Assembly (NCBI RefSeq): GCF_041956535.1
Contig: NW_027192223.1
Span: 157,952-221,951 of the forward strand
Length of the DNA: 64,000 bases
Direction of reading: 5' to 3'
Source: Calcarisporiella thermophila CBS 279.70
Lineage: Eukaryota; Fungi; Calcarisporiellomycota
Part shown: positions 58,598 through 64,000 of the stretch, in pieces
How the letters are laid out: every line of letters begins with the position of its first letter
Position numbering within the stretch: position 1 is the stretch's first letter
Program-made: the position numbers and the translations under genes
Notes under the pieces: generated by a model
Told to the model about the DNA's origin: nothing
The model's input: only the letters and a program-made list of their open reading frames with translations
The model's database searches: none

Positions 58598-58669
58598 AGG
58601 AGAACTCGGGATTTGAACCCGAAACCTTAAGATCTGCAGTCTCACGCTCTACCGTTGAGCTAGCTCTCC
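58598..58669 (-). tRNA. tRNA-Cys(GCA)
   Basis: Cloverleaf GGAGAGC-TA-GCTC/GAGC-TGAGA-CT GCA GA-TCTTA-AGGTT-TCGGG TTCAAAT CCCGA-GTTCTCC-T. U73 discriminator, intronless, followed by T-runs (Pol III terminator). Confidence 0.93.
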
Positions 58670-58752
58670 AAATTCGGGATAGCTGTTGGAATCGTATCGA
58701 GATATCTGTAGTAGGACAACCAAGCCAAGCCACGTAATCCCTCAAGCCCTGC

Positions 58753-59089
58753 GGGGGAGGGTTAGTGTAGTTGACTATCCCTGGGATGCCGATGAGAACG
58801 GCGTGGGTTCGAATCCCACTTCCCCCACCAGCACTTACTCTTAGTTTGTGACTGCTATCCACTTGATCAGAAGCTGAGTCTTGATTATTGAAAAGATCGC
58901 CCTTACGATAAGTACAACGATTACATTGGTTTCACGTACATGCTATTCACGTCAACTACGATACACGCATATCGATTGAACGTCTATCGATCAAGGACCT
59001 ATATCTCGTTATGTTAAGTCCATTGACATTAACTTCATGTAATATATGGAAATTAAATAAAAGTTTCCATTGATTGATCAAAAAAAAAA
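58753..59089 (+). mobile_element. tRNA-derived SINE, copy 1 (3' A-tail runs into the gap)
   Basis: Head at 58753-58830 has an A-box-like TAGTGTAGTTG, B box GGTTCGAATCC and encoded ACCA. It is followed by a ~250-nt body and the tail AATAAAAGTTTCCATTGATTGATC-A10. Near-identical to 63436-63766. Confidence 0.88.
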
Positions 59090-59903
59090 NNNNNNNNNNN
59101 NNNNNNNNNNNNNNNNNNNNNNNNNNNNNNNNNNNNNNNNNNNNNNNNNNNNNNNNNNNNNNNNNNNNNNNNNNNNNNNNNNNNNNNNNNNNNNNNNNNN
59201 NNNNNNNNNNNNNNNNNNNNNNNNNNNNNNNNNNNNNNNNNNNNNNNNNNNNNNNNNNNNNNNNNNNNNNNNNNNNNNNNNNNNNNNNNNNNNNNNNNNN
59301 NNNNNNNNNNNNNNNNNNNNNNNNNNNNNNNNNNNNNNNNNNNNNNNNNNNNNNNNNNNNNNNNNNNNNNNNNNNNNNNNNNNNNNNNNNNNNNNNNNNN
59401 NNNNNNNNNNNNNNNNNNNNNNNNNNNNNNNNNNNNNNNNNNNNNNNNNNNNNNNNNNNNNNNNNNNNNNNNNNNNNNNNNNNNNNNNNNNNNNNNNNNN
59501 NNNNNNNNNNNNNNNNNNNNNNNNNNNNNNNNNNNNNNNNNNNNNNNNNNNNNNNNNNNNNNNNNNNNNNNNNNNNNNNNNNNNNNNNNNNNNNNNNNNN
59601 NNNNNNNNNNNNNNNNNNNNNNNNNNNNNNNNNNNNNNNNNNNNNNNNNNNNNNNNNNNNNNNNNNNNNNNNNNNNNNNNNNNNNNNNNNNNNNNNNNNN
59701 NNNNNNNNNNNNNNNNNNNNNNNNNNNNNNNNNNNNNNNNNNNNNNNNNNNNNNNNNNNNNNNNNNNNNNNNNNNNNNNNNNNNNNNNNNNNNNNNNNNN
59801 NNNNNNNNNNNNNNNNNNNNNNNNNNNNNNNNNNNNNNNNNNNNNNNNNNNNNNNNNNNNNNNNNNNNNNNNNNNNNNNNNNNNNNNNNNNNNNNNNNNN
59901 NNN
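59090..59903. other. Assembly gap (N run)
   Basis: Run of n characters. Confidence 1.
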
Positions 59904-59933
59904 AAAAGTTGGAAATTCACATGTAATTTATGG

Positions 59934-60158
59934 CAGGGAGCGGAAATAGAAAGTTCGGATAGAGCAAGACTAAAACTGGAGTGACGAAGCAACCCTTCCT
60001 CTCTCCCAATCCGCTCTTTCCCTCCTCCCCTCCTCTTTACTTCATATCTTTCATATATTCTCACCTCTTTATTCCCCTCTTTCTTATTTCATTGTAATCA
60101 TTAAACTCTTGTAAGCTACGGAAACTAATAAAAGTCTCCGTTGATTGATCAAAAAAAA
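59934..60158 (+). mobile_element. 5'-truncated non-LTR element end (LINE-c) sharing the SINE 3' tail, flanked by a 17-bp TSD
   Basis: Perfect direct repeat TCACATGTAATTTATGG at 59917-59933 and 60159-60175. The insert has a short ORF end (..GAEIESSDRARLKLE*), a pyrimidine-rich UTR and the tail ACGGAAACTAATAAAAGTCTCCGTTGATTGATC-A8. Confidence 0.75.
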
Positions 60159-60215
60159 TCACATGTAATTTATGGAAAATAATAAAAGTTTCCATCGATT
60201 GATCAAAACAAAAAA
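60159..60215 (+). mobile_element. 3' tail of a further SINE/LINE-family copy (interrupted by LINE-c; its body probably lies in the gap)
   Basis: CATGTAATTTATGGAAAATAATAAAAGTTTCCATCGATTGATC followed by an A-rich run; matches the SINE tail. Confidence 0.7.
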
Positions 60216-60227
60216 GATGGGATACAT

Positions 60228-60520
60228 AGGTAAGGAATGGGTGTAGTGGCCTAGCTCGGGAATGTTGAAGGTATCGGTGTGGGTTCAAATCTCATTTCCC
60301 CTACCAGCACTCGCTCCTAGTTTTTGACTGCTGTTCACTTGATTAATTTTTGATTCTTTATTATTGGGTCCATCACTCCTAGTGGAATACACTGATTTTA
60401 TTTATTTGACCTACACACCATTCACGACAAAGATGCACGCTTCCGATTTCTCTCAAAGTTAAATCTGTTAGAATTAACTTAATGTAGTATTTAGAAATAT
60501 TAATGCTAATAATGTTTCTG
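60228..60520 (+). mobile_element. Diverged (older) SINE copy 3
   Basis: GTGTAGTGG A box, GGTTCAAAT B-box remnant and CCCCTACCA. Body CCAGCACTCGCTCCTAGTTTTTGACTGCTGTTCACTTGAT and ATTCACGACAA align with copies 1 and 2. End approximate. Confidence 0.7.
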
Positions 60521-60645
60521 TAACAGGACCAAGCCACCATCTCTCTATCCTGATTCAATATTTCCTTTTATATGCTCATTGGTTCCCACGCTGATTAAGG
60601 TTTATCTTGTTTACTATTTAAGCCTCGATCTTTGTTTATTATTCC

Positions 60646-60704
60646 TTGCCCATTGTTTGCCCATTCTTTGGCCCACCTTTGTCCATTTGTCCATTTTGTT
60701 CATT
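60646..60704. repeat. Degenerate short tandem repeat (TTTGYCCA-like units)
   Basis: ttgcccattg tttgcccattc tttggcccacc tttgtcca tttgtcca ttttgttcatt. Confidence 0.5.
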
Positions 60705-61482
60705 ATTCTAATTGAATTAAGACCACATTTCATATATATTCAATAAGGATCCGAATCATTAACAGTCTCAGAACTGTTACAGTTTCAGTTAATTGATAAA
60801 ATAAACTTTTTTTGGGCCATGGAAGAATAGCACCAGAAAATTTTTCAAGCTCTTCCAAATCCTCAACCTCCCATTCAACACCAAGAATATCTTTCCTGGA
60901 AAGCCCAAGTTTGATAAAAAAGTACAACCGAGGAAGAATAAAGCAAAATGTGGAACCCTCACTGATCTAGGCCATCTAACATAGTGAATAGTGCTCGACC
61001 AACCGAAATCTCTCAAAGGAGCAGAAAAGGGTACAATAAAGGTTATAGTTCTCTTGAAACCCACCTATTCTGCTAAACATTTATAGTGGTATTAATTTTT
61101 CCTGCAACAAATTAATTCACGAAGCACTATTTTAAAATAATTGTAGTTATCTAAACATATGTAATTTTGTTGTTTAATTAGTCATTCGTATTAGACATAA
61201 TATGTGCAAACATATGGGTGTAAATCTTCTAGAAGAATTAGTCCCGTTAGCGAGGGTCAAAATCCATAAAATGGCGGTTTGGGTCAGAAATTGATACAAC
61301 TCAACGTGATGGCAATGGAGAGATATTTTTTCAGGTTGAGATAAAATTCGGGACTATTTTGAAGCTCAGTTTCAATAATAAATAACTGCCGAAGGGAATG
61401 CAATAGTTGGTACAAGCAAGTTAAATATCCCTTTGAAAAACTTTTTACCCTCCTTTTTTTTGCTACTGAATGAGCGCTAAGC

Positions 61483-62444
61483 TTTTTCAATATCTTTATA
61501 TTATTATTTAAGGGTTATATGCTCGAAAATTGACTTTTTTGGTCTTTTTACACTGGAGTTGCATGTTAGATTTTGTTGGGGCATTAATACAACTCTTTAT
61601 TAATCCAAACAAACGTAGCAAAATAACTATCTAAAAATAATAATTGCTAATGGTTCAACAGAGGTCGACTCAAAAAGAGGTTGTCATAGTAATAGCAAAA
61701 GTGATTAAGGGTAATATAAAACTGATTAAAAATAAGTCGAATAAGAACTTGAGAATGTACGCATGTATTTAAACACCAACAGTTATTGGTAGTCCAGTGC
61801 TTCACCACGAATTCCTTCCACATCGAGTTGATGGTAATATCTTGCAAATATGATTGTTCGATTCCTACAGCCTCCTCAATATCCATTTTGGCCCGGCTGA
61901 CGATAGTTTCGGATGAGGCTGGGGTACTTTTAAAACGAAAGGCAATACGATCCCGATGAATTTTCCATAGTACCGAGTCAAAGGTGATTTGAGCCACGTG
62001 CTTTGCTGTTCGAGAGGATTCAGATAGATCCCCTAATATGAGGTTGCGAGCACTCATCACCTGAAAATTCTGGGGGCCTGTGATGGTGGTAATACACCTC
62101 TTCGTCCACTGCCACACTGATGTAAATTCTGGACATTCGAAAGAGGTATGACGAATTGTGTTCCTCGAAGCGTTACAGCGGGTACACATTAGATCGTGAC
62201 CAGGGAGTGTCAAGTTAGCGGTAACTCGTTCTACAAGAATTTGCCAACGTAGCGCACGATGTTTTGGGAGGGCGGGTACTCTGTGGACGGAGGTCCGGAT
62301 CTTCTCCTAATCCTTGGGTGTAGATCCAACCTCGGATCAGGATCGAAGCACCAGAGTATTCGGCACTAGAGATCCGCTGCGCTGGGAATGACGTCCAGCG
62401 AAGGGTTCTATGCTTGGGTTCTGACGGACGACTTTTCCACCTGG
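61483..62444 (-). mobile_element. 5'-truncated L1/Tx1-like LINE (LINE-b), ORF2 zf-RVT and C-terminal relic
   Basis: Frame reads D*EKIRTSVHRVPALPKHRALRWQIL...CTRCNASRNTIRHTSFECPEFTSVW...LWKIHRDRIAFRF, i.e. a CxxC..H..C zf-RVT with one in-frame stop. The 5' end abuts the target repeat at 62445; the 3' end is tentative (A5 + GCTTAGC at 61476-61487). Confidence 0.8.
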
Positions 62445-62460
62445 CGTCACAAAAGCTAAG

Positions 62461-62981
62461 TTTTTTTTCCTCTAAGGACGCGGGAACTTGCGTCCTGTGG
62501 TTTATTTAATATATATTACAAATGTGAGATGTGCTTTCGGACAGACTTATTAAGTACTAGAAGAACATGGGATATAATTTAAAGAGTTCCGTGCTTGGAA
62601 ATGTCGGATTAAGTGTTCTTGGCTTCCTCGAAATCGAATGCTACTTCTTGGCTGTCATCGGTCCGGATTAGCGAGCTCTTTCCCCATTTTTGCTTGAACC
62701 CTTCTTCGTCTTTTTTCCTCTGTGCCTGTATCCATTGTCCTTTGATTGCTATGATAAGATCTGACAAAAAGATACACTTGAATGCGATGTCCTCGTGTTC
62801 TTGGTTATCCATTACAATTGCAATCCTGGTCTTATGTATATTCCACACCATGATATCGTGTAACAACATGAAGACTTGTCGATCTTTGCCCTGTGTCTCC
62901 TCGTGGAATCCGAAGAGTTTCTCGTACTTATGCATGCTTGTCCAGGGCTTATCGAGGATCTTTTGATGGAGCCTGTTAAAC
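62461..62981 (-). mobile_element. 5'-truncated L1/Tx1-like LINE (LINE-a) with poly(A) and perfect 16-bp TSD
   Basis: CGTCACAAAAGCTAAG at 62445-62460 and 62982-62997; T8 at 62461-62468. ORF2 C-terminus '..LFG...MVWNIHKTR...FKQKW'. 3' hairpin AGGACGC/GCGTCCT after AATAAA. Confidence 0.85.
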
Positions 62982-63110
62982 CGTCACAAAAGCTAAGCCT
63001 CCATCCTCTATTACTGCGCCATTGATCCATTTAGTTCCAAATTTCCTCACATCTGTTGCGTCGAATATATGTCTAATAAGGTTTATCTTGACAATCATCT
63101 AGCTATCCCC
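62982..63110 (-). repeat. Target repeat copy A (end of a degenerate ORF: ..VRKFGTKWINGAVIEDGGLAFV)
   Basis: About 66-70 bp align without gaps to 63767-63836. Confidence 0.7.
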
Positions 63111-63435
63111 AAGCTCTTGATTGTCCTTCCTTCAACACTTCAGAAGACTAATAAACAACACAAAGTGGATTGTAAATTAATCCGGTTCTATCTCAATACA
63201 AAATAGCACGTCTTTTATAGTAAATGAAATATCGGTCTTTTTATACTGTTGTTAACGTATCACATAGGGAAAAAATAAATAATAAAAGTAATAAAATGGC
63301 ATCATATCAATATAATAAAGTTATCATAAAATAAGGTTGGCGTAATAAACTACCGTATAATATTAAATATTCTCACAAAAGGGCTCAGTTAAAGAAATAA
63401 AGATAATAAAGCGATCAAGTCACAAAAGCTAAGCC

Positions 63436-63766
63436 TTTTTTTTGATCAATCAATGGAAACTTTTATTTAATTTCCATATATTACATGAAGCTAATGTCAA
63501 TGGACTTAACGAGATATAGGTCCCTGATCGATAGACTTTCAATCGATATGCGTGTATCGTAGTTGTCGTGAATAGCATGTACGTGAAACCGATGTAATCT
63601 TTTGTACTTATCGTAAGGGCGATCTTTTCAATAATCAAGACTCAGCTTCTGATCAAGTGGATAGCAGTCACAAACTAAGAGTAAGTGCTGGTGGGGGAGG
63701 TGGGATTCGAACCCACGCCGTTCTCATCGGCATCCCAGGGATAGTCCACTACACTAACCCTCCCCC
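63436..63766 (-). mobile_element. tRNA-derived SINE, copy 2, full length with 16-bp TSD
   Basis: Reverse complement of copy 1 (about ten differences by eye) with A box TAGTGTAGTGG, B box and an A8 tail. TSD TCACA(A/T)AAGCTAAGCC at 63420-63435 and 63767-63782. Confidence 0.92.
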
Positions 63767-63836
63767 TCACATAAGCTAAGCCTCCATTCTCTACTACTGC
63801 GCCATAAATCCATATTGTGCCAAATTTCCTCACAAC
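63767..63836 (-). repeat. Target repeat copy B (..VRKFGTIWIYGAVVENGGLA[SINE]FVT*)
   Basis: Homologous to copy A. After removing the SINE and one TSD, the frame ends GGC TTA GCT TTT GTG ACT TGA. Confidence 0.7.
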
Positions 63837-64000
63837 TAGGGTTGTAAAAACACAGGATAAAACACAGTATTTTTTGTTTTTTATGCGTGTGGGATATTTT
63901 GTATGATAAAACACATATCCGACAAAAAACACGGTTTTAGGGTCTCAGTAATATGATTGGATTGCCGTCACGTGGATTAAGCCACAGTAAAAATGTATAT
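63837..64000. mobile_element. Possible hAT-like DNA transposon/MITE terminus
   Basis: Homology to target copy A stops abruptly at TAGGGTTGTAAAA, which resembles the Ac terminus. It is followed by four AAAACAC repeats. The other end is not in the window. Confidence 0.3.

Follow-up and report, generated by a model that had tools for sequence, protein, structure and literature searches.

Background

Integration beside genes transcribed by RNA polymerase III (Pol III) is a classic route by which retroelements survive in compact genomes. TRE5 elements of Dictyostelium, which belong to the retrotransposons without long terminal repeats (LTRs), integrate 40–54 bp upstream of tRNA genes in the opposite orientation, and their ORF1 binds TFIIIB (PMC5911963). 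The tRNA-targeted non-LTR elements listed in a 2018 review of Pol III-directed integration (TRE5, TRE3, NLTR-A, and NLTR-B) come from dictyostelids only, and the Pol III-directed elements listed there for fungi are LTR elements only (PMC5911963). TRE-like elements were not found outside dictyostelids (PMC5006619), and a full-text literature search retrieved no fungal tRNA-targeted non-LTR element. Here, a stretch of 64,000 nt from the fungus Calcarisporiella thermophila CBS 279.70 (contig NW_027192223.1, positions 157,952 to 221,951; henceforth called the window) was analysed, in which two copies of one repeat are broken at one and the same nucleotide, with the inserts in the same orientation, one by a short interspersed element (SINE) and one by a fragment of a long interspersed element (LINE). 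A previous reading made from the sequence alone had ascribed these junctions to a sequence-specific target hit by two LINEs and a SINE. The comparison of the elements across the genome makes it very likely that the recurring junction instead reflects two overlapping position-specific targeting systems and not the recognition of a sequence.

Interrupted repeat copies and the shared motif

The interruptions in the window are marked by a 17-nt motif, GGCTTAGCTTTTGTGAC (minus strand), which is present exactly at 62983–62999 and 63419–63435 and with two mismatches each at 62446–62462 and 63766–63782, i.e., four matches with up to two mismatches where none are expected by chance. Beyond both upstream copies of the target site duplications (TSDs) the same repeat was found, with 86% identity over 74 nt (62981–63054 versus 63764–63837). 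Re-reading of the sequence confirmed the perfect 16-bp TSD of the first LINE fragment, LINE-a (62445–62460 and 62982–62997), the TSD of SINE copy 2 (63419–63435 and 63766–63782), which can be read as 16 bp with one mismatch or as 17 bp with two, and the start of a second fragment, LINE-b, directly after the LINE-a TSD (62444, minus strand). In the genome (28.2 Mb), the motif occurred 17 times at up to one mismatch, every time at nt 56–72 of one repeat family (family 1). The loci of all 17 matches were retrieved and compared; retrieved loci are referred to by L numbers below.

SINE insertions and their distance to tRNA genes

The SINE is 330 nt long and has at least 176 candidate copies in the genome; 40 scored copies were full-length and 93–100% identical, and SINE copy 2 of the window shares 95–98% identity with them. 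Its 5′ head is tRNA-like according to ARAGORN and has a tRNA-clan match in Rfam, and its tail is A8. Together with its TSDs, the high number of copies, and their uniform length, these features characterize it as a tRNA-derived SINE. Homology between the SINE body and the target was considered and rejected as chance, as the local alignment score of 21 was reached by 169 of 300 shuffled sequences.

For 46 full-length SINE copies, the flanks were read and tRNA genes were called with ARAGORN. A tRNA gene was located 77–101 bp from the SINE 5′ end in 25 of the 46 copies (26 when counting an Rfam-confirmed tRNA in L042), with a mode of 82–86 bp. These counts are lower bounds, as some tRNA genes seem to fall in stretches that read N: in L020, L041, and L043 the flank changes to N at 76–84 nt from the SINE 5′ end, and in L030, too, N begins where a tRNA gene would be expected. 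In L037 and L045 the contig ends at about the expected tRNA distance from the SINE, and several further copies follow another element's poly(A) tail. The tRNA gene was always on the opposite strand, head-to-head with the SINE, with no adjacent case in the same direction, and the adjoining tRNAs had at least 15 different identities. The insertions consequently fall into a narrow zone upstream of tRNA genes, which have many identities, and are fixed in an orientation opposite to the tRNA gene, i.e., TRE5-like behaviour, and stacks of LINE-a follow the same orientation.

The TSDs of the SINE copies had a median length of 16 bp (range 10–20 bp, 34 clear TSDs), and for 32 of these 34 the agreement with the 17-nt motif did not exceed 10 positions, the two that fit it being those of L012 and the window copy. 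What remains of the shared target postulated earlier is that the SINE and at least two L1-like LINE families repeatedly and independently use one narrow safe-harbour target, but the data do not support the sequence GGCTTAGCTTTTGTGAC as this target. The sequence-only reading had itself named heterogeneous TSDs across the genome and a lack of enrichment for the site as evidence against sequence specificity, and heterogeneous TSDs were observed.

The host repeat

Alignment of ten uninterrupted copies of family 1 revealed a unit of about 443 bp with sharp ends, 5′-TGTTGTGAGG ... CGACGCAACA-3′, which form a TGTTG/CAACA inverted repeat. The unit is flanked by 4-bp TSDs, namely TGAA (L002, L005), CATC (L006), ATTA (L008), and GATG (window copy 2). 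TG...CA ends with an inverted repeat and 4-bp TSDs are the signature of a solo LTR, and the host repeat is thus probably a solo LTR; no LTR pair flanking gag-pol was present among 50 genomic matches of the family-1 LTR, in which internal regions read N. The assignment to a Ty3-like family rests on one open gag-protease frame of the Ty3/gypsy type (Retrotrans_gag, zf-CCHC, and aspartyl protease; L098:1493–3538) beside a rearranged LTR copy. This rearranged copy carries about 50 nt of a LINE-a tail at the hot spot, and its upstream TSD copy is missing. The possibility that the target is the end of a degenerate open reading frame (ORF) was rejected, since the unit has LTR termini and TSDs.

In eight loci with copies of family 1 or related families, LTR nt 1 was 7–14 bp from the mature tRNA 5′ end (L004, L006, L009, L011, L012, L014, L097, and L104), so that termini and TSDs as well as a position a few bp upstream agree with solo LTRs at Pol III start sites. 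The reverse LTR orientation, with the 3′ end nearest to the tRNA, was also found (L105, L106, and L099). Most of the tRNA upstream regions sampled had the end of some LTR family (...GTAACA, ...ACAACA, or ...GCAACA) at 7–22 bp.

At least four LTR families have TGTT...AACA ends and share the same position upstream of tRNA genes. One of them, LTR-Y, is a second solo-LTR family of about 341 bp (TGTTACGGG...CACGTAACA) located 9–15 bp upstream of tRNA genes, with copies in L078:1259–1599 (C33:228258–228598) as well as in L040, L053, L085, L092, and L110. A further LTR-like family (TGTTACGAG...GTACGGGGAAGTCAC...CAGTCAC...) is situated at −10 to −23 of many tRNA genes (in the upstream flanks of L024, L027, L033, L044, L069, L085, and L103); its SINE junctions are internally variable, while their distance to the tRNA is constant.

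Position versus sequence

In 17 tRNA flanks carrying both an LTR-like end and a SINE, the SINE–tRNA distance was 83.3 ± 2.9 bp and did not correlate with how far the LTR lay from the tRNA (r = 0.08, n = 17). In LTR coordinates, the junction was more variable (standard deviation 4.8) than in tRNA distance (standard deviation 2.9), the LTR end being located with a crude pattern in these 17 flanks. At an LTR offset of 22 bp (L011, L016), the SINE was still at 82 bp. In L021, where the LTR is reversed and internally deleted, the SINE was again at 82 bp and head-to-head with the tRNA, i.e., opposite to the LTR orientation, and tRNA flanks free of LTRs received SINEs at the same distance. The order in L106 (tRNA, 9 bp, reversed LTR, 77 bp, SINE) fits a SINE that was inserted first at −82 and was then pushed out by an LTR inserted at −10. 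Since about 10 bp of offset and 72 nt of the LTR itself add up to about 82 bp, the distance at which the SINE is found, nt 56–72 of the LTR fall at −66 to −83.

These distances bear directly on the best-surviving alternative, in which an endonuclease of the elements recognizes GGCTTAGCTTTTGTGAC with a site specificity of the Tx1, R1, or R2 type and the LTR is merely the carrier. The nick is identical in at least ten independent events within one LTR family, and the junction is constant in the family-1 LTR while the LTR–tRNA offset varies between 8 and 14 bp, both of which would be expected from sequence recognition. However, most copies do not reside in one target sequence: only 17 motif copies face at least 176 SINE candidates, 32 of 34 SINE TSDs are unrelated to the motif, and the LINE-a TSDs are heterogeneous. 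Nor is the insertion point fixed to the target sequence rather than to the neighbouring genes, as the tRNA distance is constant also without an LTR, the SINE in L021 is opposite to the LTR, and seven family-1 copies that are not adjacent to a tRNA are empty at nt 72 (L001, L002, L003, L005, L007, L008, and L010). Sequence recognition is therefore very improbable as an explanation of the recurring junction and is largely refuted by the heterogeneous TSDs.

Random insertion followed by survival under purifying selection only in tRNA-upstream “graveyards” of a compact genome would agree with the gene density of the 28 Mb genome and with the clustering of retroelements around tRNA genes. Selection cannot, however, yield a distance precise to ±3 bp, a strict head-to-head orientation, and the reuse of one nucleotide, which makes this explanation very improbable.

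Occupied and empty sites

Within family 1, at least 12 independent occupations of LTR copies at nt ~57–73 were recorded beside different tRNAs. About eleven family-1 copies ran uninterrupted through the site. Within the window, the insert at LTR nt 72 consists of LINE-a and LINE-b in copy 1 and of the SINE in copy 2. A SINE also occupies L012 (TSD AGCTTAGCTTTTGTGAC), a LINE occupies L014, and the insert in L097 begins with a SINE head. Two copies are occupied in L004, one (LTR nt 1 at 2072) by an insert after nt 72 and one (LTR nt 1 at 2550) by about 20 nt of a SINE tail with the TSD TGGAGGCTTAGC. In L013, the insert follows LTR nt ~70–72; L065/L082 contain LINE-a and another poly(A) element, L098 contains a LINE-a tail, and in L099, L100, and L101 the LTR resumes at nt 58–60. 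The occupied copies differ in flanks, tRNA neighbours, LTR subfamilies, and inserts, and the occupations are consequently regarded as independent events.

The same set of copies speaks to the idea that the junctions are reverse transcriptase (RT) template-switch chimeras, for which human U6/L1 chimeric pseudogenes are the model case. In this scenario, the 72-nt head would be a small RNA to which the RT switched once the RNA of the LINE or SINE had been copied, and all junctions would fall at its 3′ end. Window copy 1, L004:2072, L013:1946, and L014 indeed have only the 72-nt head followed by an insert such as a 5′-truncated LINE. Against this, ten copies are not interrupted at nt 72 but extend over the whole 443-nt unit, which is bounded by TG...CA and has 4-bp TSDs of its own, the SINE and LINE-a insertions have 16–17-bp TSDs with the LTR continuing downstream, and the 72-nt head had no Rfam family match, leaving template switching hardly credible. 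Equally negligible is the spread of one composite of LTR and insert by segmental duplication or re-transposition, as suggested by the identical TSD boundaries of the two SINE-occupied copies in the window (copy 2) and L012, because the flanking tRNAs (Gly, Gln, Pro, His, Leu, Met, and Cys), the LTR subfamilies, the inserts and their 5′ truncation points, and the TSD variants all differ, each variant being present on either side of the insert to which it belongs (AGCTTAGC... in L012).

Architecture of the window locus

The interrupted copies in the window are the far end of a nested stack of about 8.9 kb upstream of a tRNA-Cys gene, which is located on the plus strand at C33:228609–228680, 4.6 kb outside the window. 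All parts of this stack in the window are on the minus strand. The right edge of the window (63837–64000) is the left end of a DNA transposon, Z, inserted in nt 2–9 of LTR copy 2 and extending to approximately C33:228248. All five genomic copies of Z start at the base corresponding to 63837 and have unrelated flanks. With termini TAGGGTTGTAAAAA and TAGTGTTGTGAA and the 8-bp TSD GTTGTGAG (window 63829–63836 and L078:~1250–1257), Z is classified as hAT-like from its sequence features. It is a low-copy element of about 6.4 kb, whose far end (~C33:228248; L078:874–1249) was set by alignment ends and the TSD, and match spacing suggests derivatives of about 0.5 kb (C13) and about 2.7 kb (C3). That the right flank belongs to an LTR element with direct repeats was considered and rejected, as the match spacing in the shorter copies and the 8-bp TSD indicate a transposon with terminal inverted repeats.

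Next to Z lies the 5′ segment of LTR copy 2 (nt 2–72, 63766–63836), which aligns to the 5′ end of the LTR family and whose nt 1–9 are found beyond Z. It is followed by the full-length 330-nt SINE copy 2 with its A8 tail (63436–63765), inserted after LTR nt 72, by the downstream TSD of this SINE (63419–63435, corresponding to LTR nt 56–72, with its partner at 63766–63782), and by nt 73–443 of LTR copy 2 (63054–63418; ten-copy alignment, genome match C33:221005–221387), which end with ...CGACGCAACA at 63054. The 4-bp TSD of LTR copy 2, GATG, is located at 63050–63053, and its partner lies by LTR copy 2 nt 1 beyond Z (L078). The 5′ segment of LTR copy 1 (62983–63053) reaches to nt 72 (C33:220934–221002, query 4–72), and its nt 73–443 are missing from the locus. 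It is interrupted by LINE-a (62461–62981), the 3′ end of a 5′-truncated LINE with a stem-loop followed by an A8 tail, and LINE-a is followed by LINE-b (61852–62444), a 5′-truncated fragment of an L1-like LINE from the C-terminal ORF2 region that was recognized by similarity to genomic copies.

Beyond Z, nt 1–9 of LTR copy 2, one G, a 341-bp LTR-Y, 10 bp, and the tRNA-Cys follow in this order. The LTR-Y copy (L078) has TGTTAC...GTAACA ends and a perfect 4-bp TSD, GGAT. When Z (8-bp TSD), LTR-Y (GGAT), and LTR copy 2 (GATG) are removed layer by layer, nt 1 of LTR copy 2 comes to lie at 11 bp from the tRNA-Cys. SINE copy 2 is at 83 bp from this tRNA gene after removal of Z and LTR-Y, and the 5′ end of LINE-a within LTR copy 1 is at about 79 bp after layer removal.

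A second, opposing stack is anchored in the window by a tRNA-Cys on the minus strand (58598–58669; ARAGORN; Rfam RF00005, 66.7 bits), with SINE copy 1 (58754–59087, plus strand) head-to-head 84 bp upstream of it; within this stack, 814 bp that read N (59090–59903) come immediately behind the SINE. The two tRNA-Cys genes are transcribed away from each other, each with a stack pointing away from its own tRNA (58598–60430 and 61852–64000), and about 1.4 kb of unique DNA (60431–61851) lies between the stacks.

LINE families

At least 40 copies of LINE-a are present in the genome; they are truncated at different 5′ positions, and their TSDs are heterogeneous. Many of the copies start right behind another element, after its poly(A) tail and TSD. 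In 10 of 18 LINE-a copies read with longer flanks, a head-to-head tRNA was located 0.4–2.3 kb on the 5′ side, with other poly(A) elements in between; most of the remaining flanks run into stretches of N. For LINEs with no other element between them and the tRNA downstream of the insertion site, the 5′ junction is at 77–94 bp (L014, L086, L094, and L069). A zf-RVT domain (PF13966) was detected in longer LINE-a copies and in relatives of LINE-b, and the readable RT N-terminus of a LINE-b-like copy matched human L1 ORF2p best (residues 372–660, E = 9e-39; R2: 7e-16). No APE domain was seen in the readable LINE sequences, whose RT cores and 5′ parts read N.

LINE-b is 73–84% identical to at least 40 genomic copies over query positions 49–593, and its first 51 nt resemble another subfamily. 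Only 61852–62396 are common to other genomic LINE copies; 61488–61851 had no other match in the genome. The open frame of the LINE-b region continues to 61647. The sequence-only reading had suggested that LINE-b may end at A5-GCTTAGC (61476–61487). Because 61488–61851 are private and nt 73–443 of LTR copy 1 are absent downstream of LINE-b, this 7-nt match is not readable as a simple TSD, and the proposed end was not confirmed. The segment 61476–61851, for which no other genomic match was found, may belong to LINE-b as a private 3′ part that ends in A5 and borders on GCTTAGC, or may be host DNA that is unique. The A5-GCTTAGC junction itself could have been left over from the same nick site after a deletion, or it could be chance.

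Each poly(A) family has a short stem-loop before the tail, as is typical of partner recognition between LINEs and SINEs. In LINE-a it is located at 62469–62500 (GGACGC...GCGTCC). In the SINE, it lies just before the tail (window 63444–63475; also 60120–60156) and consists of GGAAA..TTTCC followed by ATTGATTGATC, which is common to the SINE and a second element.

Proposed mechanism

Starting from the observed distances, orientation, TSDs, and nesting, the junctions would arise as follows. An LTR retrotransposon family, now mostly present as probable solo LTRs of about 443 bp, would integrate 7–14 bp upstream from the 5′ end of the mature tRNA with Ty3-like positioning. The tRNA-derived SINE and several L1-like LINE families would integrate by target-primed reverse transcription head-to-head with the tRNA, with a first (bottom-strand) nick about 66 bp and a second nick about 83 bp upstream of the tRNA, giving a TSD of about 16 bp. 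An LTR at −10 would put its nt 56–72 (GGCTTAGCTTTTGTGAC) into the nick window, where they would become the TSD, and later insertions would reuse the tRNA-proximal TSD copy, which would build up ordered stacks. The landmark may be read via a putative protein tether to the Pol III machinery (TFIIIB or TFIIIC), by analogy with Dictyostelium TRE5-A, while the exact nick would be chosen by local sequence inside the permitted window; the order of these events is likewise deduced.

Several points weigh against this interpretation. Three tRNA-adjacent LTR copies carry no insert (L006, L009, and L011). In the family-1 LTR, the same nucleotide (±1–2) was reused in at least ten events even though the LTR offset varied between 8 and 14 bp, implying that a local sequence preference acts too. 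Inspection of the nick sites by eye gave no consensus beyond a T-rich start after an A-run, and it seems that the tether sets a window of roughly ±5 bp, in which local sequence or DNA shape then fixes the nick. For the SINE copy in L025, no Pol III gene was recognised at a distance of up to 400 nt. In L015, a stretch ~85–120 nt from the SINE 5′ end is tRNA-like (GGGGGAGAGGTGGTGCAGTGGTCC...) and in the expected orientation but was not called by ARAGORN or Rfam; it may be another Pol III-transcribed unit serving as landmark. Furthermore, the loci were chosen by matches to these repeats and do not represent an unbiased genome census, the nesting between the window and the tRNA-Cys rests on visible junctions, and the chronology of the layers was inferred.

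Implications and comparison with known systems

Going one step further, the loci may, as a tentative proposal, represent a complete guild of tRNA-gene-targeted retroelements, in which several Ty3-like LTR families use the position at about −10, and several L1-like LINE families together with their SINE use that at about −66 to −83. If so, its non-LTR members would make up the first system of this kind outside dictyostelid amoebae, and Pol III-guided target-primed reverse transcription would have been invented independently, with an offset of its own. This offset points to a different contact, e.g., TFIIIB at its upstream edge or the first nucleosome upstream. A LINE/SINE system of a fungus that has a sharp offset of 83 bp and shares its tRNA genes with Ty3-like LTR elements would be a new convergent case and would permit a comparative test of how the machinery of target-primed reverse transcription reads the Pol III complex. 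As regards annotation, two overlapping position rules can also produce a repeated “target sequence” that has perfect TSDs, so that sequence specificity should not be called before the TSDs of all copies have been inspected.

Tx1 in Tx1D, R1 and R2 in 28S rDNA, and Utopia in U2 snRNA genes also reoccupy one nucleotide of a multicopy sequence in a fixed orientation. Nearly all of their copies are in the one target, however, whereas here only a small minority is, and the TSDs are otherwise unrelated. The host repeat resembles the solo LTRs of elements inserted at Pol III start sites, i.e., Ty3 (Saccharomyces cerevisiae), Tj1 (Schizosaccharomyces japonicus), Tyl3, Ylt1, and Tyl6 (Yarrowia), and DGLT-A (Dictyostelium); in comparison with these, its TSD is 4 bp long.

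The non-LTR elements match TRE5-A (and TRE5-B/C) of Dictyostelium discoideum in kind, as judged by behaviour: both are poly(A) non-LTR elements that occupy a narrow window upstream of tRNA genes in opposite orientation, independently of the target sequence, and in a compact genome (PMC5911963; PMC5006619). TRE5 ORF2 has an RT followed by a zinc-finger region, and a zf-RVT domain and an L1-like readable RT part were found here. The differences concern the offset (about 83 bp to the 5′ junction and about 66 bp to the first nick versus 40–54 bp for TRE5), the host (a fungus versus an amoebozoan), and the users of this insertion zone, which unlike in TRE5 include a tRNA-derived SINE and several LINE families. 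Like the elements described here, NLTR-B of Polysphondylium pallidum and NLTR-A of D. purpureum keep a fixed distance upstream of tRNA genes (39–64 bp and 2–6 bp, respectively; PMC5911963); both are independent lineages of non-LTR elements. They differ in these offsets, in having an RNase H domain instead of the zinc finger, and in their restriction to dictyostelids, and they show that targeting of tRNA-upstream regions evolves repeatedly.

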